NCBI RefSeq assembly: GCF_006345805.1
Contig: NW_021835092.1
Coordinates: forward strand, 1 to 43,930
Reading direction: 5' to 3'
DNA length: 43,930 bases
Source of the DNA: Octopus sinensis
Lineage: Eukaryota
The notes under the pieces are model-generated. The model was not told the DNA's origin, made no database searches, and worked only from the letters and a program-made list of their open reading frames with translations. The position numbers and the translations under genes are program-made. The number at the start of each line of letters is the position of its first letter. Positions within the stretch are counted from its first letter, which is position 1. Positions 6,799 through 33,951 of the stretch are shown one piece after another.

Positions 6799-7001
6799 TT
6801 ACATCATATGAGGTAGACATTCGAGTGCATCGAAACACTCAAATTTCTCAAGAGCTTCTCCGAGTGTTCTGTGTGTTCGCGTCTCTGGATCACAAGTTGT
6901 AAACCATCTCCGCAGCATCTGGAAGCTTTGTTCAACGGTGTCAAGAGGATTGTCATTTTTGATGATTTCCAATCGAACAGTTTTAATTCCTAATTCTCTT
7001 C
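6799..7001 (-). CDS. Terminal death-domain exon (G)[66 protein letters not shown]
   Basis: Acceptor gttttgcag; LG+...+..I......EQ..QML..W......L..AL death-fold pattern; TAA stop. Confidence 0.9.
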
Positions 7002-10000
7002 CTGCAAAACATACAACAGTTAGAAATAACTGCAACAACATAAACAATATTATAAAAGATGTTTACTGTAGTTTGTTATAAATACAACAAAGGCATTATG
7101 TCCATAGAGGAATGAGAAGTAGTTAAGAAACATAAAATATATAAGACATCGTTCTCTATTTCTAAGAACGCTGATTAAATAATAACAAAGAGGTTGAAGT
7201 ACAGGATGAAAATTGTGAAGATTTTAAAGAGAATTAATTGTAAATTACATTTGAGAATATGGTAAATAGATGGCAGGAGAAGTGTTTATGGGGGCAAAAG
7301 TATATGAGAACCTAGAAAATCAACATAGACGACCAACAGTCAAACCATTTGATCCATCCGTCCATTTCCCCTGCTCAATATTCCTGGGAGGGTTTTGGGG
7401 TAGAGGCCTCCTCTATAGGGTCCCATCAGATGCAACCGTCGTAAGACGTTTTGGTTGGTTTCCTATGCGCAAACAACTAAGACTATGAATATGATCCAAC
7501 CATTTCGTTTTTGGTCTACCCCTAGGTCTTCTACTCCATTGGTTTTGTTTTGAGAATTTGTCCTTTAATTTGTTCCTGCGACATTCCGATCATATGTTTG
7601 TAGTACCAGAGATGTGAACATGAAGAGACTCCCATATTTCTGAACTATACATTCTATTGAGTAATGTTACTCTAAAGACCCATAAATGGAATCTCATTCT
7701 GACTGTTTGATAACATCCTATGATCAATGACTAAAGCATATCACGATTTAAAAATATCTTGATTGATTTTCTGGATTGAACTCTCAGAAAAAGCTAGGTA
7801 CATCTGAACTAATTAAAATACGAAAAGACAAGATACAAAAATGACCTCCACGTATTATATTTTGTCCATCTGTTTGGCTTTCACTTTTCAATTCCTTCAA
7901 TTTTTTTCCGATTGATTTCAAATTTCATGTATTGATGTAGAGTTGTATGCTAATTATGGAAATGATTCACTTTCCCCCCAAATTTAATAAATAAAAACTT
8001 AACAGCTTTTAAATCTACAAATTTTGTATTGTACTTTAGTCACTCGAAATCCACAAATGCATTGGCACCCGTTTCCATGGTATCAAGCTAAGGTGTTGTG
8101 TAGCCTCCTTACTCGTCTGTTACCTTTTATTCTTGCTTTTACACGTCTGTTATTGTCACTCTGAAACTTCCCCTTCTAAGGTTGACTCGTGTCTCTGCGA
8201 GTTTATTTGGCACAGGGATTACGAAAATTGGCAGGAATTCTGGTTTTCTTATCCCCACATAATCCCAAATAACTTTCTGTATTTTGGGGGATTTTCAGAA
8301 ACTGATTGCAAATTTGTGTTCTATACATGGGAATTATAAAATTATGAAGTAAAAATCTGTGTGAGTTAAGTTAAGTTAATTTTTTGGCTCAAAAGCAAAA
8401 AGCAAGGCCATGTAGGGGGACATGGAGTTAAGTACAGGGTGGTGTTCATGTAAAGAGTTCAGGCCACTTGAGGTCAAGGGAGACTTTGAACAAAGCGGTC
8501 GTCGGCATCTTCACCATCTTGTCTGTTAATGGCGATTTAGCTGTTGTTTTTAGCACATCTCCTTACCACCTGACATCTTCCTCGTTTCCTTGCTACTATG
8601 ACATGTATTGATGTCTTTCAATATTTTTCCTCCCATAAACTCATTAAATGGAATGATCATGCAGTGAAGGGTGGTCGGTTGCTGGGATTTAGGCAAAGAA
8701 TTCGGACAAACTCTGTATTTCAAACTCTGATTTGAAAAACAAAAAATTGGAAAAGTGTATAAATTTTAGGATGTATGAAGGTAAGGGATTAATAAATGTT
8801 TTGAAATAAGTTTGCTTAATCAGAGGAATTCCCGTGAGTAGGACTCAAATTTGCAAACATTTTCTCAAAACTCCAAAAAATAAAAAAAACTGTATACGTT
8901 CAAATGGGATGCTTAAATCAGAATTTTCTTTTACAAACTCCTAAACTGCGTCGCAAACTTTCGTTATTTTTTCGTAATTCAACATTCCCATTTAGTTTAT
9001 ATTGTTTTTTCTCGTTTTTCTAATTTTTCTCATGCCTGTTATGATATTTCACATAAGTTAATTGATTAAAACTTATTAAAACTTCCGTCGTTGAATTTTT
9101 TGTCGTCGTAATGTCGTCATCTGTTGTCGCTGTTTTGTGATCCCGCTCAAAATGCTTTCTTCCAAATCCTGTTTTCTCATTGGGTAAAAATTATCAAAAT
9201 TTAATCTGCTAACATTTGAAGAAATTTTTCTGGAACAAGTGAATAACATCAGGTTCAGTATGAAACAATATATCAATAGTTTCCCCTTGATAATAAAATT
9301 TCAAAAGTTAAAGCAAAAAAAAAAAGAATGATACGCATTTCTTTCACGGTGTCAATGCCATGATTTAGAGAGAAATCAATAATGGATCGGTGTTATGATA
9401 AAGCTAGAAATGAGAAGAGATTTAGTTAGTAGGAAAGAAGGCAGGACCCACCAACCTCTACGTTATTCACCTACATACAATAAACCACTATATGTGGGTG
9501 CTGCCTGGTACACTACTAGATGGACACTGGACAGTGGAGAGGCTACATGTCACACAATATACACAGAAAGCTGTGAGAAAGGACCATTTAATGATGCCGT
9601 CCTGTACTCTCAAATATGTCCCCTATCTATTATTATCAAAACCGCTGACCTCGGTGGATATTTTCTGAGTCACTTTAAAGAATCCCTTTAAAGCTAACCT
9701 TTCAATTGGATAGAAGGAATGGGACCTTTTTTTCAGTCTGAAACTTATATAAATCAATTAGGTACTCTTATTTTATACTCACCGACTTGTTGCCATTTTC
9801 CTCCTAAATTTTGTGCGACATCTTGGAGAAACTTTTCATCTAACACTGGAGACTCTGAAATAGATATTCCGAAATTAGATACTTAAAGTTAATTTTCTTT
9901 ATTAATAATCTATATTTATTATTGTGAGAAATTCCTATCATAATTGGTCACTGGTGACCGCTATGGTTCGGTCAGCATTATACTTTCCACGGAGGCCTCA

Positions 10001-13000
10001 TATAATAGCTCAATACTTAGGCCCACATCAAAATACACTAACCTTTCTAATTTCCTATCTCTTTTACGGCTTCTTAATAGTGTAATAATGTTACTATTAT
10101 CTCATTTAATTATCACAGTATTTTTTTAGTTTTGTATTTCTTCCATTACATCTGTGCGAAATCTATGACATGGCATTGGCCTCTGGCGTCTAGACTTCAC
10201 TAACCAACTCTCTTCTCATTTGCTTAATTCCAATATTAACCCAGTTTGCCGTCAAACATGCAGCCACAAACACATGGCACCTCACACCAAGTAGAATAGA
10301 CATGCATCTGCTAACGTTGCTGCTGGTAATCTTTAACTAACATCACGGTTCACCATCTGATTCAGGAAATATTTGAAGACTCCTTCTTAAAGCAGCTTTT
10401 TTTAAAAGCAGAGAAATGATTAGTTCTACACAGGTGGAACACAAACTGTCCACATCACTGTACACCGGAATGTTATGTAACTCAAGAAATGTTTGCAAAT
10501 ATTTGAACGCCATACATTCTCCATAATAAGGGCATTTGTTCAGGTGGGTAATGGTTAGATTCTGCACAGGGGGCGAAATAGCATGATATCTCTCACACAT
10601 TATCATATGAAAACATTTGAAAAGTATTCGAGGAGGTACCTGCGAAAAACTGGAATTTTGCAATATTATTTTATTCACTTAGCTTTACACGTTTACACTT
10701 TTACAGCCCTCAAAGTATTATCCATTTGAAGCAATCCTCGGCCCAGAAGCTTTAATATGAAGCTGTAATATTATACTCACCAACTGGCTTTGTTGTAGAG
10801 GATGTAGGCTCTGACACCTTCGAGAATTTCCCATGCGTTGGAGCCTCTGAAAAAATATGTTCAAGTTTCAGGCATTAAAGTTTCGTTATCATTCATACTA
10901 TATTTATTGTTGTGAGATATTCTTATCGTCCATAATCAACTGGTGAGCACTATTTTTTCCACCAACATTTCTATACTTTTTACTGTGATCCTATTAAATG
11001 CGCCAAATGTAGGACCGTGTAATAACCCAATATATAGGTCTACTACTAAATAGACTGACCTTCCTAAATCTCCTCGCACTATTAAGACATCCTACATAAT
11101 CTAACACTATTGCACTTATCTCATTTAATAATCACTTGTTAACACTGCTAATCTCCTTATTATATAATCTAATCTATGACATGATTGTCCTCTCATCTCT
11201 AGACTTCACTAATCAACATTCTTCTCGTTTTCTACTTAATTCCATGACAACCAAATTGGTCCTCAAAAGTCGGACCATGACACATCGTTTCAGGTAGGAT
11301 AAACATAACCCCGCTCTCTTTTTTAAAGGTCACTGTTGGCAATCTTTACTTTTAACTGACCACATCACACTTCATCAGAATATCATCTGATTAAGGAAAT
11401 ATTTGAAAATATTTCCATGTCAATCATTCTCTTAATAAGCGACTTTTTTCAGGTGAACAATGATTAGTTCTACACAGGTGGAGAGGTAAGCGATAACAGG
11501 TATCCTGAAACACTGTACTTTTGTACAAAACCTCCTTAGCAACAAAATCACTGTTCATGTACACATTATTACAAAGGGGTTATATCCAAATTGAGAACTA
11601 ACAATTTATTCTGGAGAATATATAAATCGAACTGGAAACATGAAATTTTGCACTTTTTTTAGTAGTTTTGAATTATCAGTTGTTTTCTGTCCATCTTCAG
11701 CTTTGCCATGGTCTCACTACCCCAGTATGTATCAGTCAACAAGATAGCGTACCACCATCTTTACCTTTTGGTTTGTCTTTCACTTTTGGCATGAGTTCTC
11801 CTGCCGTTCGTAACTTCCCTTGCTCCAGCTGACCATTCACAAATGATATACTGCATTACTTATTTGTTTGAAACCACATTCTTGACTAAGTACTAACTCT
11901 ATCGAGTCTACTAACCAGAACTATTTGCATATCCTTTTAGTCTCTTGTTAGTATTGTTATGTCAGCCATGAATATATTTCCGTGGAGCAATTTCTTCTGG
12001 ACATTCTGTTAATCTAATTAGCAAAACTATAAAGATCACCAACCAACTGATATTGTGCAACCTACAGTTATTCCAGATCCAGAACCTGGCAGTCTTTTGT
12101 CAAGTTTTATCCTATGAAACACATTTTGAAACTGTTATAGCATCTCCTCATCAGATCCTTAATCTCCTCCCATTTATGAAAGAAATTCCTTGTTTCCATC
12201 AACAATGTGTGTGGTACAGAACAATAAGCATTAGCCAGATCAAGCCATACTACATCCGAAACCCTTTTATTCTTCTTTGCATTTTATATGGCATCCCAGA
12301 TTTAAAATGCATGTTCTACACACCAGACATTCTCCGAATTCTAGTCTTCTGGATATTTTCTGTCATATAACCATTATTTGCTGACATGTAACTGATTTCA
12401 TAGCAAGTACACCCATGTAAATCTTGCCATTCAAGATTGAAATTGGCTTCAATTGGTCACTTAGTTCTGCATTAACTTACTTTGATGAATAAAATCCTTT
12501 GGCTTGCACCATTCATTAATCAGTTACCCTTTATCCCACAACTCTCTAAATAGTAATTAATGCTTATAACACCTGGGCACAACATTTGTACACGTTCTAT
12601 GGTACACAATCACCTCCCGTTGCAATCTCCGGTCTTGCCTTCTTCACTAAGCTTTATACTTGTTTCTTGCTGAAATCGCAAAGCTGAAATATTTGATTAC
12701 TGGTTTCATTGGACATTTCAATACAAACATGAGCAGGTAAAGTTGACTTCGCTTGGGATCATTGTATATCTCCCGTATATTCTTGTTCACTTCATCTTTA
12801 TTTCGTTATAATCTGCTGCTCTTAGCGGCTGCAAAAAGAATCCTAGCACCGTAAGCAGGGTTCTTAAGGAGCTGCTATCTAAAGTGTTCACTATCCTTTC
12901 TCATTTCAACCCGTCCGATGTCTCTTTGAATGTATTTGATTGTATTGTATCATACAGCCTCTATGAAGTTTGGAGAAAGGGAAACAGACAACGGTTTTCT

Positions 13001-16000
13001 GAGCAGCAAACCAACGTCTTCCACTTGAATAAAGACAATGTTTACTGGATGCAATGATAGATTTATTATCAGTGAAAAATGACAGGGTGTTCATATTTGG
13101 AACGCATTTCATTGTAAGTCTGCCAGATTATGAGAGACATCAGGCAAAATAACAACAAATAACAGTCCCACTGTGTGGCACCTTGGGCAAGTGTCTTCTA
13201 CTATAGCCTCGAGCCAACCAAAGCCCGTCGTATGTATGTTGTATGTATGTATGTATATATGTATGTATGTGTGTATGTGTTTGTCCTCCCAACATTGCTT
13301 GACAACCGGTGCTGGTGTGTTTCCGTCCCCGTACCATAGCAGTTTGGCTAAAGAGACAGATGGAATAAGTACTAGGCATACAAAGAATAAGTCCTAGGGT
13401 CGATTTGCTCGACTAAAAAGGTGTTGCTCCAGCATGGTGACAGTCAAATGACAGAACCGAGTAAAAGAGTATAAAACAAACAAAACCTTTGTCATTACCT
13501 CACCTGTTAAACCACAACATATATTATTTGGCTGTTCCAAAAGAGAACCTGAAATCTATTTCGCTTCTAATTTATCCATTTCACCAACCGTGCTAACCTG
13601 ATTGGATACTTTATGAAATGTCAATAGTATCGATATGTTTAATATGATTAGTTTAATGCTAAAACTTCCCATTGACAGGTAAGAATGGAAGCTGCTCTTT
13701 ATCATTCTGATATCAAAATAGTTCAGCAGGGGATAAACCTTACAGAAATCAATCAAGTGCTGTTATTTTATACTCACCAACAGGTTCAGTCAATTTCTGT
13801 ATTTCCTTGACTTCAAATGTTCGATTCACTGAAATGAATATTTCCAAGTTTCAAACAATTTAGAAAAAATTCTCTATCTTTACTAATAATATATATTTTA
13901 TTATCAGCGACTACTGTGATCGATGATCAACTGTTGAAGACAATAATTTTGGTTAGAATGTTTATAGTTTCAACAGGATTACCATGTAATAGTTTAATAT
14001 TTACACTGCTTTCCAAAATTTCCTTTATCTTTTGAGACATTCGACATAATCTAACAACTGTGTCATTATTTCATTTAATTATCACTTGATAACACCAATC
14101 TTTGATTAGGTTTGTCTTTCCTTCTTATATCTGCACTAAACATGACGTGAAATTGTGCCCTCACTTCTGCCCTTCTCTAACCAACATTATTCTCAGCTTT
14201 GCTTAATTCCAATGGCAACCAGTTTGTCATCAATGATCTAACCATTAACACATTACACACACCACTTTAAGTTGTATAAACACTCACACCTGATCTCCTT
14301 CTTAAACATTACTGCAGGTAATGATTAGTTTTCAACTTCCTGCATCACTGTTCACCAGAATGTCAGCTGATGCATGAAATGCTTTAAAACACCTTAATAG
14401 AGCAGTGTTTATAAAGATGAGCGAAGATTACTTCTACACAGGTGGAACAGAAAATGATAACAGGTGTCCTCAAAGAGGATACACTTGCACAAACTTCACT
14501 CTACTACAGGTAACTCTTCGTCCTTACATTATAGCAGTGCAAAGATCTGAAATGGTAGAATGGAAGTGATTCTGAAAACTCTAGGATATCTCTGACAACC
14601 CGCTTCTATATATCAACCAAACTTTCACCTCTCCTTTGACGTCCCCTTAATCAATGCGATGCCTCTGAATGGGCTGAAAACTCAGTTCAATCAAATCTGA
14701 GGGGACGAAATGGACATCTCTGTAGAAATATTTACCTGACAGAAACCGTCTTCCTGATGTTGTAGTTAACAACATTACAAGGAATATGAAACCCTGCTCA
14801 CACCCCATTCCACCATCACTGTTTTACCACATTTGTCACTAATGATCATTGACGTCAACTAATTGAAAATGTTTCTAAAATGTTTTATAAAATACATCTA
14901 ATTAGTGTCAAATACGTATACAGAAATGTTCCACAACATAGTGTTTCTTATGAAATGAAGCAAAAACACAATACCATCAAAACTTACTGAAACATAGGAA
15001 CCATAATCACGGTTCGTATGGATGTGGTCATGTAACCAAGGAAAATTGTAAAACTACAGAGAGTAATAAGGTGTAGAATGTTACTCGAAGATGCTAAGTT
15101 CTGTTGAGGTTCTACAATTTGAGAAATGATCTACCAATGAAAAGAAGATTCACAATATACAATATGATATTTAGAGGCCTCTGATATTCGTTCCGGGTGT
15201 AAAAATCGTGTTTTTGACAATTTTCAACTCGCCACTTCACCATGTGTCCTATTCAACAATGGATCGAAACTTATTCTCCAAGATTGTATACATCTACACT
15301 TTATTCGTTCAAAATTTCAAAGTCTGTTCTTAACTTCTTCACAGTTAATTTTATTTTTCCAATATGTGTTTTTTAACAAAATTGCACAGTTCTCTGACAG
15401 AACTTTTATCACACAAGGTCAATAAAAGTGACAGGACCAGCAAGTTCAGGGAGGGAATACATTGATTACATCGACCCCAGTGCACAACTGGTATTTTCCT
15501 ATTGACCCTGAAGGAGGGGTGAAAAGGCGAAGTCAACCTCGGCAGAATTTGAAATTAGAACCTAAAGACGGACGAAATGCAGTTAAGTGCATTAACGATT
15601 CTGCCAGGGGTCACCTTATCTATTATTTAATAATATTAAAGCGGCGAACTAGCAGAATCGGTGGCGCGCCGAACAAAATGCCTAGTGGCGTTTCGTCCGT
15701 CTTCACGTTCTGAGTTTAAAATTCCACCGAGGTTGTCTTTGCCTTTCATCGTTTCAGCGTTAATAAAATAAGTACCAGTTGTGTACTGGGGTCAATATAA
15801 TCGACTCATTTCCTTCCCTGAAAATGATCACACAAGATCAATAAAAGGGCAGATATAAACCTATTTGGTAAAAGGATCTTATTTTACATATAAAAATTTA
15901 TATTTTAAATCATATTATTTTCATATTGAAATGCTTATGGTATTAAAGTAAAACTCCTAATTACAATTTGAGATGTTATTGATTTACAATTCATTGATTA

Positions 16001-19000
16001 GATATTAACAGACAATTATCTAATTAGATCATAATTATACGTTTTTGTATTTTTGATTGTAAAAATAACTAGATATAAACGATGACAATCTCTTCTGGAT
16101 GAGAGCAGATCCTCAGGCGCCAGCTTATAAAACCTGGTTCTCTGTCCCAGGTTCTCAAACCAATCAGATAATGTTCTGTTAGGGCACCCGAGAAGCATTG
16201 CTACAGATCGAGGAACGCCATGACCGAAGTCATGCGTTTGATTGGTGCATGAAATTAATAAATCTTGGTTTTCATCTGAGAGTTCAATGATACAACCAAT
16301 GTACCAATCATTTTCATTCGTGTATCCAACATATTTTCAGGACTTTAACTTTGAAATATCTTGCTCAGATGCTGGTCTCTCCTCACCTAAAAGAGTGAAA
16401 TTGTCATCAGCTGATATCTTCTTCGTTAGAAGATCAGATCTTGAAGAAGGGACGAAGCGGTGATGGGATCGTGTGCCAACTAATTTCACTGAGCTGCTGA
16501 TTCGTGAAAGCAAGTCGAAGCTGTTTTCATTTTGGATGACATCGGCTGCCGACATGTCAAAGAACATTATCTCTGGAATGCTTGCACATGCTCAGCCATA
16601 CATCTTGCAACCTGTGAGAAAATGTCTTTCCTGGTTGCTTGTAGACTTGCTTTTTCAGCAACACATTTCTTCATCCTACTGATTCCCTCATATGTACTTT
16701 TTCCACATGACATGGCAAAGAAAAACGACTCCGCTTCAAGTCCTTGATCATTCTGATGATGACAGAGATTTGTTTGGTGTCTCTAGTTCTTGTATTGGTC
16801 GGCTGCACCGTCACTGAAGTACAGAGAATGTTTATGAATGGAAGTTCTGTCTTTATATGCGATATCACCCTCGTAATAAAAGCATGCACTGTGGTGTTGT
16901 CATGTTTCAAACAATCAGATATGACACAGATTGAAGTGCATTGAGGGTTTGAACCAGTCTTATAGTAGATCGCGAATGGATGAATATATTGGCCTGGGAG
17001 TTGTTCCAATGAAACCCTTGATCCGAATCCTTTTCTACAAAACTATAATTTTCTGCCAAGTCTGACAATACTGTTGCTTGATTTGATGTCAGATCATCTT
17101 TCTGATGAAAAAGGAGACTAGTTTGAGCCTTTGCTATGAAATGGGGTTGATGCAGAGTATCAAACACATTTTTAGTGGTTTGAAGGAAATCATTCACTGG
17201 GGAAGTTAGGCACATCAGGAAGGCCCAGTCCACATAAATCCTCGTTACTAAATCCTCTGAGTCAAAATCACATGATTAAAATATGTCAAACACTTCAGTC
17301 CACTCAGCTGGCGAAAATATGTAATTTTACAGCGGACTAAATCAAAATCAAAATCGATCAACATCAATGGAAATTGTAGCTGTGATACCAGTGCCGGTGG
17401 TACGTAAAAGAACCATCCGAACGTGGCCGTTGCCAGCACCGCCCGTCTGGCCTCTGTGCCGATGGCACGTAAAAAGCACCATCTGATCGTGGCCGTTTGC
17501 CAGCCTCGTCTGGCACCTGTGTCGGTGGCACGTAAAAAGCACTCACTACATTCACGGAGTGGTTGGCATTAGGAAGGGCATCCAACCGTAGAAACTTTGC
17601 CAGATCAGATTGGGCCTGGTGCAGCCTTCTGGCTTCCCAGACCCCAGTTGCACAGTCCAACCCATGCTAGCATGGAAAGCGGACGCTAAATAATGATGAT
17701 GATGAATGATGATGACTAGCGTCCTGTTCATGGAAGAATATATACCTCGGGGGAACCGGGAAACCAACCCTATGCTTCTTATGGTCTTACATAATTAGGT
17801 ACAGTTATTTTCTACTCACCAGGTGGTTCTGCCAACATCTGGACTTCCGGCTTTGACGACTTTGGACCCTCTGAAATAAACAATTTCATGTTTTAAACAC
17901 TGTAGAAAAAAGTCTTTATCATTATTAATAATCGATGTTTTATTATTGTTAGACAATCCTATCATCATTGGTCAACTGGTGACCATCATGCTTTTGGAGA
18001 GCATTTGTATAATTTCTACAGTATTACAATGTAATTATTCAAAATTTAGGTCCACAACAGCATAAACTACACTTAACAACCCTTCTCTGTCTCTTAAGGC
18101 ATCCAGCAATTCTAACAATTCTGAAATTATCTAATTTAATTATCACCTAATAACAACAGATTCTCTCTTAGTTTCGTTTTGGTTTTCTTATGTTTGTTCC
18201 AGATCTTTGACAAGACATCGTCATTTCACCTCCAGAGATCTCTAATCAATATTCGTCTCATCTTCTGCTAAATTCAAATGTCAACCAAGTTGCGCATCAA
18301 ATATCCAACCCCAAACACGAAACACCACTTCAGGATATATATATAATATATATATATATATATACCTGTTCTCTTTGTTATTGGTTACTACTAGTAATCT
18401 TTAATCTTAATTACCCACATCACAGTTCTCCAGAATGTAATCAGATGTGGGGAAATATCTGAAGATATTTCAATGTCATTCATCCTCCTGAATAAAGCAG
18501 GTCGAACAGAAAGTGACATCAGGTCTAACAGGAAGTGATATCTCGTGTCCTAAATTAACACACTACATTCCACAAACCACCTCATAACGACATAAAACTT
18601 GTCGTCCAAACATTATTGCTGTGAAAATATTTGAAACGGTTCAGAAGAACTGATCCTCAGGAATACTAATCTATACATCAATCAAAGTTTCCCACCCTTT
18701 TGATGTCCCCTCTCTAATGTTGGTCCCTAAACCCTCAGTTGAGATTTTCTTATTGAGTCTCCTATTTTATAAAGGCTCACTCTGATATTCATATAAATGC
18801 AGTTGTTTTTAATTATCGGCTTCCGAAGATATTGATAAATCATTAATCACTCTAATCACACACAAGATGTCGGTATTTACTGATAGAACCTTGGTGATTT
18901 ATTGGTATTTAGTCACCATTTATAATTCAGTATTCTTTATAAATTTTATGTTGCAGAAAGTAACCATCTTGAAATGTGACAAGTCTTCTAATTGGACGAG

Positions 19001-19565
19001 AACAATGTTTAGTGGGAGTAGTGAGAGACATAATATGACAGAGAAAAGACACCTGGAACATCTTTTATCAAAAGTGTGCTTGATTAAGGCAAACTGGATC
19101 TAAACAACATGAAATACAATATTCCACACCATAAAGCCCATGAGACAAACATACAGATCATACAGTATTCTTACCCAAACTATTTTTGCTCGTTATATTC
19201 TGTCTACACATAGGGCATCGTTTAGGTATCTTTTGGGGACAGCATTTCTTACACAGCGAAAGATGTTTACATGGAAAGAACGTCTCTGTGGCCACTTCGT
19301 CTTCACAAAACACACATCTGAGGAACAAAAACATGAACACATCCCATTAATAACATTCATTATAACAAATATTACATTGTGTGCATATTTACAGTAGAGA
19401 ATATTATGCGACACCACAATAAACAATTACATATTGGCGAATTTTGTGTGTATATAAATGCATCCACAGACACACACACAAACACACGCACAAACACACA
19501 CACACACATAGACACACACACACACATACACACACACACACAACACACCACCACACACCCACAAC

Positions 19566-19796: not shown

Positions 19797-20908
19797 GTTT
19801 AGATGGGCTGGGCACATCGCCCCATCACCGAAAATCTGTGGACACGCGCAGTTGTCGAGTGGTACCCGCGCGAGTGGAAACGACCACCCGAAGGCCTCCA
19901 CGTCGGTGGAGTAACGATTTCAGGAGGACGATTGGGATCACGTAGATGAGGAAGGCGCGATCCAGAGAGGAGTGGACATTGTGCTGTGACCAGCGGTGTC
20001 AATTGGACGCCCGGACGCCCGGACGGACTAGTCGGTCAAGGTGATATATATGTATGTATGAATATATGTATGAACGTATGTAATATATATGTATATATTG
20101 TATCTATTATATATATATTGTGTGTTGTGTGTGTGTGGTGTGTGTGTGTATACATACATACATACGTACGTACGTACGTACATACATGCATACATACATG
20201 CATACATATAACACTTGATTGTATCTAATCTGTTTTAGAAGTCGGCTATACTTAGACATTTGACTTTGAATTTTATGGATGGACAGATAGGACACAATTG
20301 CTACAGCTTCATGTATGGCTGATCCATGCCACAAAACAGGTCATTGTTCTAAATTAGAGTAATGACTTTAGATTTATATACGATATGTGTGTACATAACC
20401 AGGGAATTATTTTCAAAAGTGATGAGTTGAATGCAGTAAATGTCATGTTTCCATCTGCCATCACTGCACCACAAACTTCAGATTGATCTCAGGCCATTAC
20501 AAGGTACATTGTTATTCAATGACTGAAAGACTGTGAGAAATAGTTCAACTACCTGATTGGTCCCTTCAGTGCCTGATCCATGCGTCTTCCTCCACCATGG
20601 CTGTGGAATAAATAGCAAGTTACATTTCGTTACACAGAGACACTCTAATTTACAGTAGAGAATATTATGCGACACAACAATTAAACAATTACATATGGGC
20701 GAATTTGTGAGTATATAAATGCAGACACAGACACACAGACACAGACACAGACACACAGACACACAGACACACAGACACACACATACACACACATATATAT
20801 ATATATAAATGGACACAAATATTAATAAGTATATGTCATGACATTGATACATCACAAAAACTGATTTACGCAAAGTGAACAACGTATATTCCAGAAATAT
20901 AATTCACT

Positions 20909-30808: not shown

Positions 30809-32571
30809 TAGATAGAAAGATAGATAGATATGTTTCTTTATTAGCCACACAGGGCTGCACACAGATAGAACAAATTACAAGGTAGAGCTTTTCTTTTGAA
30901 GGTTTAAAAAAAAAAAAGAAAGGAAGGGGGAGTTTCGATCAAAAGGGATCGTAAAAGGAGAGAAAGAGGACAAAAAAGGGGGGGTTAAAAAAAAGGGGGA
31001 GAGGAAAAAAAATTGATCAATAGGGATCAGATAGATAGATAGATAGATAGACAGAGAGAGATAGAGAGACAGACAGACAGATAGATAGATAGATAGACAG
31101 AGAGAGAGATAGAGAGACAGACAGACAGGCAGATAGATAGAAAGATAGACAGATAGAGAGAAAGATAGATAGATAGATAAATAGATGGATAGATAGATAG
31201 ATAGATAGATAGATGGATAGATAGAGAGAGAGAGAGAGAGAGAGATAGAAAGAAAGAAATAGATAGACACACACATCCATATATACATGGTTGTAGTGTA
31301 AGGAACATTTTTCCCAGCCATACACGGTTCCACGTTGAATCCCTCTGCATGGAAACTCAGGCAAGTATATTCTACCCTTACCTAGGGCTGAACAAAATCT
31401 TATAAGCGGATTTGGGAAATGAAAACTGAAAGAAGCTTCATAACAGGAGTGTGTCTATGTGTGTGCCTATGTATGTGTGTGTGTGTGAGTTAGTGTTTGC
31501 ATTTGTGTGTGTGTGTGTGTAGCGGTTCGGTAAAGAGGCTGAGAGGATAAGTGATATGCTTAAAATAAAAGAAAGGACTGGGATCGATACATTTGACTAA
31601 AAATTCAAGGTGATGCCCCAGCATGACCGCAGTCAAATGTCTAAAACAATTAATATATATATATATATATATATACCTGATGTCTGTTATATTTTGGTTC
31701 ATCTCATAATGACCTTGTTTCATTTGACCATTAAAGATATTACTATCAGTGGTGGTGGTCAGTTGGACTGTCCACACCACTAATATCAACATCAACATGA
31801 TCAATATACAATTCCTCCACAAACACAAGTGTTGTGTAGTACATGTGATTAAATCTACCCCCATTATTTCACTGGTACCTTGATAGTATTTATATTATAC
31901 AGATCAATAAGATACTGGAGAGTGTATAAAATACGTATTTATTAACTAACCTGCTTCAGCATCGCACACACCACTATATATTTTCGCCTGAAAGTAATGG
32001 ATGAGGAAAGAAAAACATGAAAAAAACAAACATCACACAGCTTGAGATAATAGTTATTAGGTCATTAAAGAAAACAAATGTAATTAGATCACAATAACTT
32101 AATTACAGCAATTATTACACACATATTCTCACACACATATATATTTATTCAATACACACTCTACACAGTAGAACAATGATATATACACACCTGAGTAAAC
32201 CCAGAAATGTAAAGACAGGAAAAATACTGCTAAGAATTCTGACAACTTATATAAACATGAAATTTAGGAAGGAAAGAAGGGCTACAGGTAATCATATGAA
32301 CCCCAGTACATCACTGGTATTGTATTTTATCAACCTTGCAAAGATGGAAGGAGAAGTTGACCTTGGCAGGATTTGAACTCTGAACGTAAAGAGTCGTAAA
32401 TAAAATAACACAATTTATTTTCTTCAAAAGTAATAAGAAAGAAGATAATCATCATCATCATCATTATCATCATCATCAGCATCATCATCATTATCATCAT
32501 CATCATCATTATCATTCTCATCATCATCATCATCCTCATCATCATCATCATCCTCAACATCATCATCATCC

Positions 32572-32610
<39 letters not shown>

Positions 32611-33092
32611 GCATCATTATCATCATTATCATTCTCATCATCATTCTCATCATCATCATCATCCTCATCATCATCATCATCCTCATCATCCTCATCATCA
32701 TCATCATCCTCATCATCATCATCATCATCATCATCCTCATCATCCTCCTCCTATCATCAGCAGCATCATCATCATCATCATCATCATTATCATTATCATC
32801 AACTTCATCCTCATCATCATAATCATCATCATCATCATTATCATCATCATCATCATCATCCTCATCATCATAATCATCATCATCATCATTATCATCATCA
32901 TCATCCTCATCATCATCATTATCATCATTCTCATACTCATCATCATCATCATCCTCATCATCCTCATCATCATCATCATCATAATCATCATCCTCATCAT
33001 CATCATCATCATCATCCTCATCCTCATCATCATTATCCTCATCATCATCATCATCCTCATCATCATAATCATCATTATCATCATTCTCATAC

Positions 33093-33123
<31 letters not shown>

Positions 33124-33532
33124 CATCATCATCATCATCCTCATCATCATCATCATCCTCATCATCCTCCTCCTATCATCAGCAGCATCATCATCATTAT
33201 CATCATCATTATCATTATCATCAACTTCATCCTCATCATCATTATCATCATAATCATCATCATCATTATCATCATTATCCTCCTCATCATCATCATCCTC
33301 ATCATCATCATCATTATCATCATCATCATCCTCATCATCATCATTATCATCATTCTCATACTCATCATCATCATCATCCTCATCATCCTCATCATCATCA
33401 TCATCCTCATCATCCTCATCATCATCATCCTCATCCTCCTCCTATCATCATCACCATCATCAGCATCATCATCATCATCATCATCATCATTATCATTATC
33501 ATCAACTTCATCCTCATCAACATTATCATCAT

Positions 33533-33577
<45 letters not shown>

Positions 33578-33951
33578 TACCATCATCATTATCCTCCTCA
33601 TCATCATCATCATCCTCATCATCATCATCTTAGTGAGTTTTCCAGTATTTAAGTTCTATACTTAGGCACACACACACACTGAACCTAAAGAGTCGTAAAT
33701 AAAATAACACAATTTATTTCCTCTGAAAGTAATAAGAAACAAGAACTGGAGAAAAGAAGGAAGACAGTTTATTAAAGGAACCCCTGGGTATTACTGGTAC
33801 AGATTATATTGACCCCAGAGTGATAGTAAATATTTTGGTAGGATTTGAACATGGAACATAAAGAGACAAATGTAAATACTGTAAGGGGATGATTCTCTAT
33901 TTAGCCCAGGGTCGGAGTAAATAGGGAAACTACAAAGGAGAGAGAGTGAGG

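Follow-up and report, generated by a model that had tools for sequence, protein, structure and literature searches.

How does a gene come to carry, between the exons for two folded domains, a row of small exons with the same phase and the same splice-site context, and what does this row contribute to the protein? The question is raised by a gene on the minus strand of a 43,930-nucleotide stretch of the Octopus sinensis genome (contig NW_021835092.1), which is referred to here as the window (43.9 kb). The product of this gene has ankyrin repeats, a C3HC4 RING and, at its C-terminus, a death domain. Between the RING exon and the last coding exon lie four small exons, which together with their introns are referred to as cassettes D, C, B and A in the direction of transcription. 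All coordinates are those of the window, and all statements about the array refer to the minus strand (Table 1). We conclude that the array is a clear but ordinary tandem exon duplication of the additive cassette type. A preliminary description of this locus had proposed a linker built from such an array, and its interpretation is supported by our analysis with one correction, which concerns exon A.

Four tandem copies of an intron and a small exon

The exons that begin at 17820, 13778, 10781 and 9783 are 51, 51, 66 and 72 nt long and, in agreement with the preliminary description, are all of phase 1-1 with a common donor context. Each of them follows a ...TTTCAG acceptor, has an open frame and ends at a G|GTGAGTA(T/G)AA donor. 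The corresponding motif GGTGAGTAKAA has four matches in the window, solely at the four exons, compared with a chance expectation of 0.03. The codon interrupted at the end of the RING exon has only its first base there, and the last exon opens with the second and third bases of a codon; all introns that follow the RING exon are thus of phase 1.

The similarity extends far beyond the splice sites. In a self-blastn comparison of positions 9500-19000 with the whole window, all four units are colinear with 65.6-69.3% identity over 230-660 bp (E 1e-16 to 6e-36), and no fifth copy of the cassette was found in the window. In a MAFFT alignment, the four units align over ~940 columns, i.e. from ~800 nt upstream of the acceptor to ~35 nt past the donor, and each exon is flanked on both sides by homologous intron. 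Independently, repeat finding recovered four-copy families that are in register with spacings of ~1010, 2960 and 4060 bp. These three approaches agree with the earlier claim that the 0.7-0.9 kb of intron 5' of each exon is homologous, and the five colinear blocks quoted in support of that claim are each present in all four copies, some of them in degenerate form. The self-comparison thus gives a significant colinear alignment of the introns that supports the duplication, and the tandem duplication of intron-plus-exon units is directly shown.

Units A and B abut, with their donors 998 bp apart as previously stated, while the B-C interval holds 2.2 kb and the C-D interval 3.3 kb of extra DNA. 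Besides decayed open reading frames, the longer gaps contain dispersed repeats that recur at other places in the window (13163-13475, 17511-17715 and, as an inverted pair, 15474-15568/15700-15801). Thus, the insertions of the preliminary description are present; the names Hero, Sola-like and RTE that it gave to some of them were not confirmed, Pfam searches with the decayed open reading frames and with translations of the two long gaps in each minus-strand frame giving no match even at E<=1. Two further features of these introns were observed. The intron of cassette A has an internal tandem duplication of ~100-130 bp (10350-10448 / 10444-10576), both copies of which match 11354-11484 in cassette B. 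Within the C-D intron, the minus strand of 15059-15130 encodes 24 residues that are 100% identical to part of P0008, a protein with two death-domain tails; this match points to either an exonised intron sequence or a chimeric gene model across tandem paralogues.

In a repeat-rich genome with dispersed repeats in the gaps between the units, the unit could itself be a transposable element, dispersed and equipped with splice sites, that was inserted four times, with the exons arising by exonisation. We regard this origin as extremely improbable. No copy of the unit was found elsewhere in the 44 kb window, nor outside the interval between RING and death domain in six related loci; all copies have the same orientation, phase and position; units A and B follow each other directly; neither target-site duplications nor terminal repeats were seen; and one of the copies encodes an integral helix of an ancient domain, as described in the following section.

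Death-domain helix 1 and the modules of predicted disorder

The exons were placed using stop-to-stop open reading frames and tblastn with related proteins. In a Pfam scan, the joined model matches Ank families, zf-C3HC4_3 (37.5 bits; cut-off 27) and Death (PF00531; 35.8 bits; cut-off 22.6), and the Death match covers profile positions 2-82 of 86. This match starts at residue 238 of the model, which is within exon 9783-9854, i.e. exon A. The structure prediction by AlphaFold2, for which the sequence from the RING to the end of the protein and an alignment of 10 relatives were used, gives a death domain of five helices with pLDDT values of 82-91, and the helix at residues 110-130 of this input begins in exon A. 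By contrast, residues 44-105, which comprise the tail of the RING exon and the modules encoded by D, C and B, have pLDDT values below 50 and no secondary structure. Because both the Pfam match and the predicted helix start in exon A, the linker proper consists of D, C and B and has 56 residues, and this stretch is predicted to be disordered. Thus, the proposal of a four-exon linker holds for D, C and B but not for exon A, which encodes helix 1 of the death domain. It also follows that skipping of exon A preserves the frame but truncates the death domain, which loses helix 1.

How are the modules related to exon A? Because the flanking intron is homologous on both sides, the four exons are positional homologues. 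The consensus derived from 22 modules of the family, C-P-K-S-E-E-K-A-V-Q-T-V-A-E-S-V, matches that of 11 A-type exons in register at seven of the first 13 positions; between the module consensus CPKSEEKAVQTVAESV and the 23-residue A-type consensus these are P2, K3, E5, E6, K7, V12 and A13. Within the modules, P2, K7, V9, Q10 and E14 are retained in 16-18 of the 22. Moreover, in P0042/P0185, which are encoded by the related locus L004, the linker includes a second A-type exon of 72 nt, SLNLEENRAHSTSKKVAVKQQQV, in which the death-domain signature residues have been lost. These sequence comparisons suggest that the modules are shortened and drifting copies of the helix-1 exon, and we infer that descent would have been from A to the modules.

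In the explanation that we favor, and to which we assign a probability of about 0.78, an ancestral segment of ~1 kb consisting of an intron and the 72-nt, phase 1-1 helix-1 exon would have been duplicated in tandem between the RING exon and the last exon, giving rise to a linker of modules followed by a death-domain helix exon. The 3'-most copy, A, would have retained its role in the death domain, while the upstream copies D, C and B would have lost 21 nt or drifted otherwise and would now encode modules of 17, 17 and 22 residues rich in Pro, Lys, Glu, Val and Ser, which together would form a disordered tether. Because these exons end with G|GTGAGTA, follow TTTCAG and are symmetric with respect to phase 1, any module can be omitted without breaking the frame, and the window locus could yield eight linker variants of 0-56 residues. 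Because homology between the units permits unequal crossing-over and slippage, copy number varies between loci. The length of the tether may affect how the RING/ankyrin part is placed relative to a death-domain assembly.

A different function would follow if the modules were repeated partner-binding peptide motifs, i.e. degenerate copies of helix 1 whose copy number and splicing set valency and not distance. Modules of O. bimaculoides, O. sinensis and O. vulgaris repeatedly show the consensus x-P-K-S-E-E-K-A-V-Q-x-V-A-E-S/P-V, and the helix from which the modules would have descended is packed in a protein-interaction fold, both as would be expected for such motifs. However, the low-confidence prediction lacks any secondary structure for the modules, the C and B types differ strongly from the consensus, and no known motif was identified in them. 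We therefore find it rather unlikely that valency is what the array sets.

Related loci, isoforms and rates of change

Six related loci, L001-L006, were compared with the window. The closest is the O. sinensis locus LOC115232124 (L003), located through its longest isoform P0021. Over 27 kb, this locus runs colinear with the window (94-96.5% identity), and it contains five cassettes, the C unit having been doubled by a tandem duplication of ~1.9 kb with copies that are 97.6% identical. L001 has cassettes D and C and a divergent A, and L002 cassette D and another divergent A. In L004, a unit of only 166 bp (51-nt exon and 115-nt intron) is repeated in 5.9 copies at 8394-9370 with 94% identity; one unit of this array is dead, with a frameshift and a damaged donor, and is absent from the annotated protein. 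The cassette design is shared by O. bimaculoides genes (L006). Overall, the repeat units range from 166 bp to ~2 kb, and relatives from O. sinensis, O. vulgaris and O. bimaculoides have 0-6 modules, some of them 26-residue variants. The acceptor context AAT.TTTATTTCAG is kept by all cassettes in all loci and the donor GTGAGTATAAAA by nearly all. Thus, the expectation that paralogues differ in cassette number was borne out, with five cassettes in L003, three, two or none in others and up to six modules, and copy number is still changing.

The cassettes of the window have clear counterparts in these loci. Identity to cassettes of the same type amounts to 97-98% for cassette D (L003 and L001), 92-95% for cassette C (C cassettes of L001 and L003) and 99.2% for cassette B (L003), the exon of which is identical in the two loci. 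In a neighbour-joining tree of 14 cassettes, the grouping is by type and not by locus; across loci, identity within the D, C and B types is 84-99%, compared with ~66% between different types. Because the cassettes group by type across loci, the founding duplications predate the spread of these paralogues. Along the locus, a (TA)n microsatellite in cassette D (18324-18364) marks the point at which the similarity of L002 to the window drops from 95% to 78%; L001 ceases to resemble the window between cassettes C and B. These few boundaries suggest mosaic recombination in the linker region. The same microsatellite is also one edge of a deletion that removed the RING exon in L001.

If any subset of the small exons can be skipped in frame, as previously proposed, isoforms that differ by whole modules are to be expected. 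Arithmetically, the proposal is correct for all exons from the RING exon to the last; as outlined above, it does not extend to a complete death domain when exon A is skipped. The evidence on splicing comes from the RefSeq isoform annotation of paralogues, as opposed to transcripts of the window locus, and at this level the expected skipping isoforms are present. For LOC115232124, X1 and X2 include all five micro-exons (D+C+C'+B+A in X1), X7 is without both C copies and X6 without D and one C; because X1 combines all copies and other annotated isoforms in the family have 0, 1 or 2 modules, mutually exclusive splicing was rejected. The isoforms of XP_029656407 have both modules (X1), the second only (X2) or the first only (X3). 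In O. bimaculoides MIB2, X1, X2 and a third product successively lose one and then two modules, and the isoforms X9-X22 of one O. sinensis gene have zero modules, each of four single modules and all six pairs. In P0014, the A-type exon is skipped as well. Regulated splicing, or tuning of the linker, at the window locus would be an inference from the annotation of these relatives.

Several observations weigh against the explanation we favor. First, exon D changes between loci at the rate of the intron, and exon C (window 13778-13828 compared with L001 7127-7177 and L003 17249-17299) changes 4-5 times faster than the intron (13/51 versus 27/388 sites; Fisher p=1.7e-4). Because the linker exons evolve at or above the intron rate, their sequence is not under evident purifying selection, which fits a spacer but also a neutral by-product. 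Second, the A-type cassettes of different paralogue subfamilies diverge from each other (57-65%) as much as the cassette types do; as a consequence, the events cannot be put in a clear order, and an account of them has to include mosaic recombination. Third, RefSeq isoforms are models, and their combinatorial completeness may in part reflect the enumeration of junctions by the annotation pipeline. Finally, the database proteins returned include none identical to the predicted product of the window gene, the closest being O. sinensis and O. vulgaris entries labelled 'MIB2-like' or uncharacterised. With respect to exon C, the differences are mostly amino-acid-altering, and its fast change could reflect diversifying selection or a patch of gene conversion.

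The absence of an identical protein among those returned would be accounted for if D, C and B were pseudo-exons at the window locus, with the RING exon spliced straight to A, or if the gene were a decaying paralogue, and many members of the family are indeed fragmentary or chimeric in the annotation. By contrast, none of the four exons has lost its open frame or its consensus splice sites, and the exons for the RING and the death domain are also intact. For D, B and A, the encoded peptides are the same as in RefSeq isoforms of the 94-96.5% identical L003; the D peptide is also 100% identical to the corresponding part of P0001, P0009 and P0010. On this evidence, decay of the locus or its linker exons is improbable.

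The rates of exon change also bear on the question of whether the array has a function at all. It could be real but functionally neutral, a product of slippage, unequal crossing-over and splicing noise in which linker length has no adaptive meaning. Besides the divergence of the linker exons, this would fit with the unit of L004 that is already dead, with a module number that varies widely even among near-identical loci, and with the 166-bp mini-cassettes of L004, which are annotated as exons even though they lack the conserved intronic 20-mer described below. On the other hand, splice sites and phase have been retained in every cassette of six loci and in two species (O. sinensis and O. bimaculoides), the five module positions listed above are kept in most modules, and the 20-mer is conserved against a background of ~66% identity. 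Neutrality is thus possible, but we consider it doubtful.

The best-conserved stretch of the four units does not lie at a splice site; it is an intronic block, GTGATAATTAAATGAGATAA, in which 17 of 20 columns are invariant compared with 29.5% overall. A 20-mer of this type is present once per cassette in the window, where 0.01 would be expected. With up to four mismatches allowed, most of the long cassettes in L001-L006 have it at a distance of 245-292 nt before the acceptor, and the match in O. bimaculoides is exact; it was not detected upstream of the A-type exon of L002, the two modules of L005 and the L006 exon at 49146, and it is absent from the mini-cassettes of L004. The block contains two GATA-type sites, a TAATTA core and stop codons in all three frames. 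Several candidates for its nature were rejected. RNAalifold on 12 cassettes gave -0.37 kcal/mol and no real structure; Rfam gave only two sub-threshold mir-297 matches, which are on simple repeats; and in local alignments of the exon unit with its own intron, scores did not exceed those of shuffled sequences, as opposed to what relics of dead exons would give.

The array might alternatively be a selected device with two roles, in which the 20-mer would control the inclusion of modules or act as a repeated enhancer, and the cassettes would serve as in-frame recombination adapters, their homology and common phase 1 letting ankyrin-RING 'heads' and death-domain 'tails' swap between paralogues. 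We consider this quite unlikely and mention it as a speculation.

Outside the array, three observations complete the description of the locus. The 48-nt exon that precedes the RING exon shows no sequence relationship to the cassettes and is included in some RefSeq isoforms (relatives P0002, P0003 and P0021) and omitted from others. Retention of the intron that follows the RING exon would end the frame at 19161-19175 with ...SLGKNTV*, and P0017 from O. sinensis has an identical SLGKNTV read-through tail; such an isoform would have a C-terminal RING and neither linker nor death domain. Finally, 38400-43930 and 32330-33650 contain several kilobases of GAT/GAC-rich repeat with a GC skew near -0.95, in which the minus strand has open frames of up to 1457 codons that would encode poly-Asp/Glu.

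Table 1. Features of the window in the order of transcription (minus strand; extra DNA without strand)
Feature	Position	Strand	Remarks
Ankyrin-repeat exons	~38.2, 34.3, 27.5, 23.8 kb	-	Open reading frames and tblastn
Optional micro-exon	20553-20600	-	48 nt, phase 2-2, 17 residues; between ankyrin and RING exons
RING (zf-C3HC4_3) exon	19175-19317	-	Enters in phase 2, leaves in phase 1 (...NITSKNSL G|gtaaga); Pfam, tblastn of relatives
Cassette D (homologous intron and micro-exon)	17778-18640	-	Exon 17820-17870, 51 nt, 17 residues
Intronic 20-mer, cassette D	18127-18146	-	
Extra DNA between C and D	14494-17777		Inverted pair 15474-15568/15700-15801, frameshifted open reading frames 16019-17275, SINE-like repeat 17391-17715
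Cassette C (homologous intron and micro-exon)	13736-14493	-	Exon 13778-13828, 51 nt, 17 residues
Intronic 20-mer, cassette C	14066-14085	-	
Extra DNA between B and C	11530-13735		Decayed open reading frames; dispersed SINE-like repeat 13163-13475 with microsatellite
Cassette B (homologous intron and micro-exon)	10740-11529	-	Exon 10781-10846, 66 nt, 22 residues
Intronic 20-mer, cassette B	11116-11135	-	
Cassette A (homologous intron and exon)	9741-10576	-	Exon 9783-9854, 72 nt, 24 residues, death-domain helix 1
Intronic 20-mer, cassette A	10097-10116	-	Exact consensus match
Last coding exon	6799-7001	-	Remaining death domain and stop codon; enters in phase 1

Comparison with known systems

RefSeq names many members of this octopus family after mind bomb (MIB). 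The family resembles the mind bomb E3 ligases (MIB1/MIB2) in having ankyrin repeats followed by a zf-C3HC4_3 RING. In Pfam searches (E<=0.001) of the full-length relatives P0041, P0190 and P0047, Ank families and zf-C3HC4_3 (and Prok-RING_4) were found, together with Death in P0041 and P0047 only, and there was no match to the MIB_HERC2 or ZZ families; this result applies to the relatives, and the N-terminus of the window gene itself was not defined. Vertebrate MIB2 is not known to have a death domain. The resemblance is, as judged from domain content, a partial domain similarity and not orthology. A full-text literature search returned no paper on this octopus family.

What this lineage-expanded family does is to join the RING of a ubiquitin ligase to a death domain. 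The architecture suggests a role in cell-death or innate-immune signalling, in which the distance between catalytic and assembly parts could matter. The array alters no general principle. It does provide a clean and datable example of how a disordered linker can originate, in which an exon for part of a folded domain would be duplicated along with its intron, after which the duplicates would decay into modules of a spacer. With a common phase and common splice sites, the length of such a linker is heritable in that it depends on copy number, and at the same time it can be adjusted by splicing. In addition, the cassette array explains the dozens of isoforms and the chimeric models in the annotation of these genes.

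Tandem exon duplication is a well-established source of alternative exons (PMC9013439). The octopus array has in common with Dscam1-type clusters of mutually exclusive exons the tandem duplication of exon and intron and a shared length class, phase and splice-site context (PMC9013439). However, the octopus exons are additive cassettes, and the longest isoforms (P0021) contain all copies. Docking/selector RNA pairing was not found by RNAalifold in the most conserved intronic region of 12 cassettes, a search in which long-range pairings were not covered exhaustively.

The system closest in behaviour, and the nearest functional analogue, appears to be the PEVK exon array of vertebrate titin (TTN), in which short duplicated exons encode a disordered segment whose length is set by differential splicing (PMC6469411). 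In both systems (PMC6469411 for titin), short symmetric exons have been duplicated in tandem with their introns and encode a segment rich in Pro, Glu, Val and Lys that is disordered, in the octopus by prediction; exon number varies between species and transposon insertions lie between units; and segment length is set by differential splicing, on the octopus side as read from the RefSeq isoforms of paralogues. However, the octopus linker has 3-6 modules and titin more than 100, and the octopus modules are located between a RING and a death domain, whereas those of titin are part of a muscle spring. Moreover, unlike those of titin, the octopus modules appear to have their origin in the exon with which the neighbouring folded domain begins.

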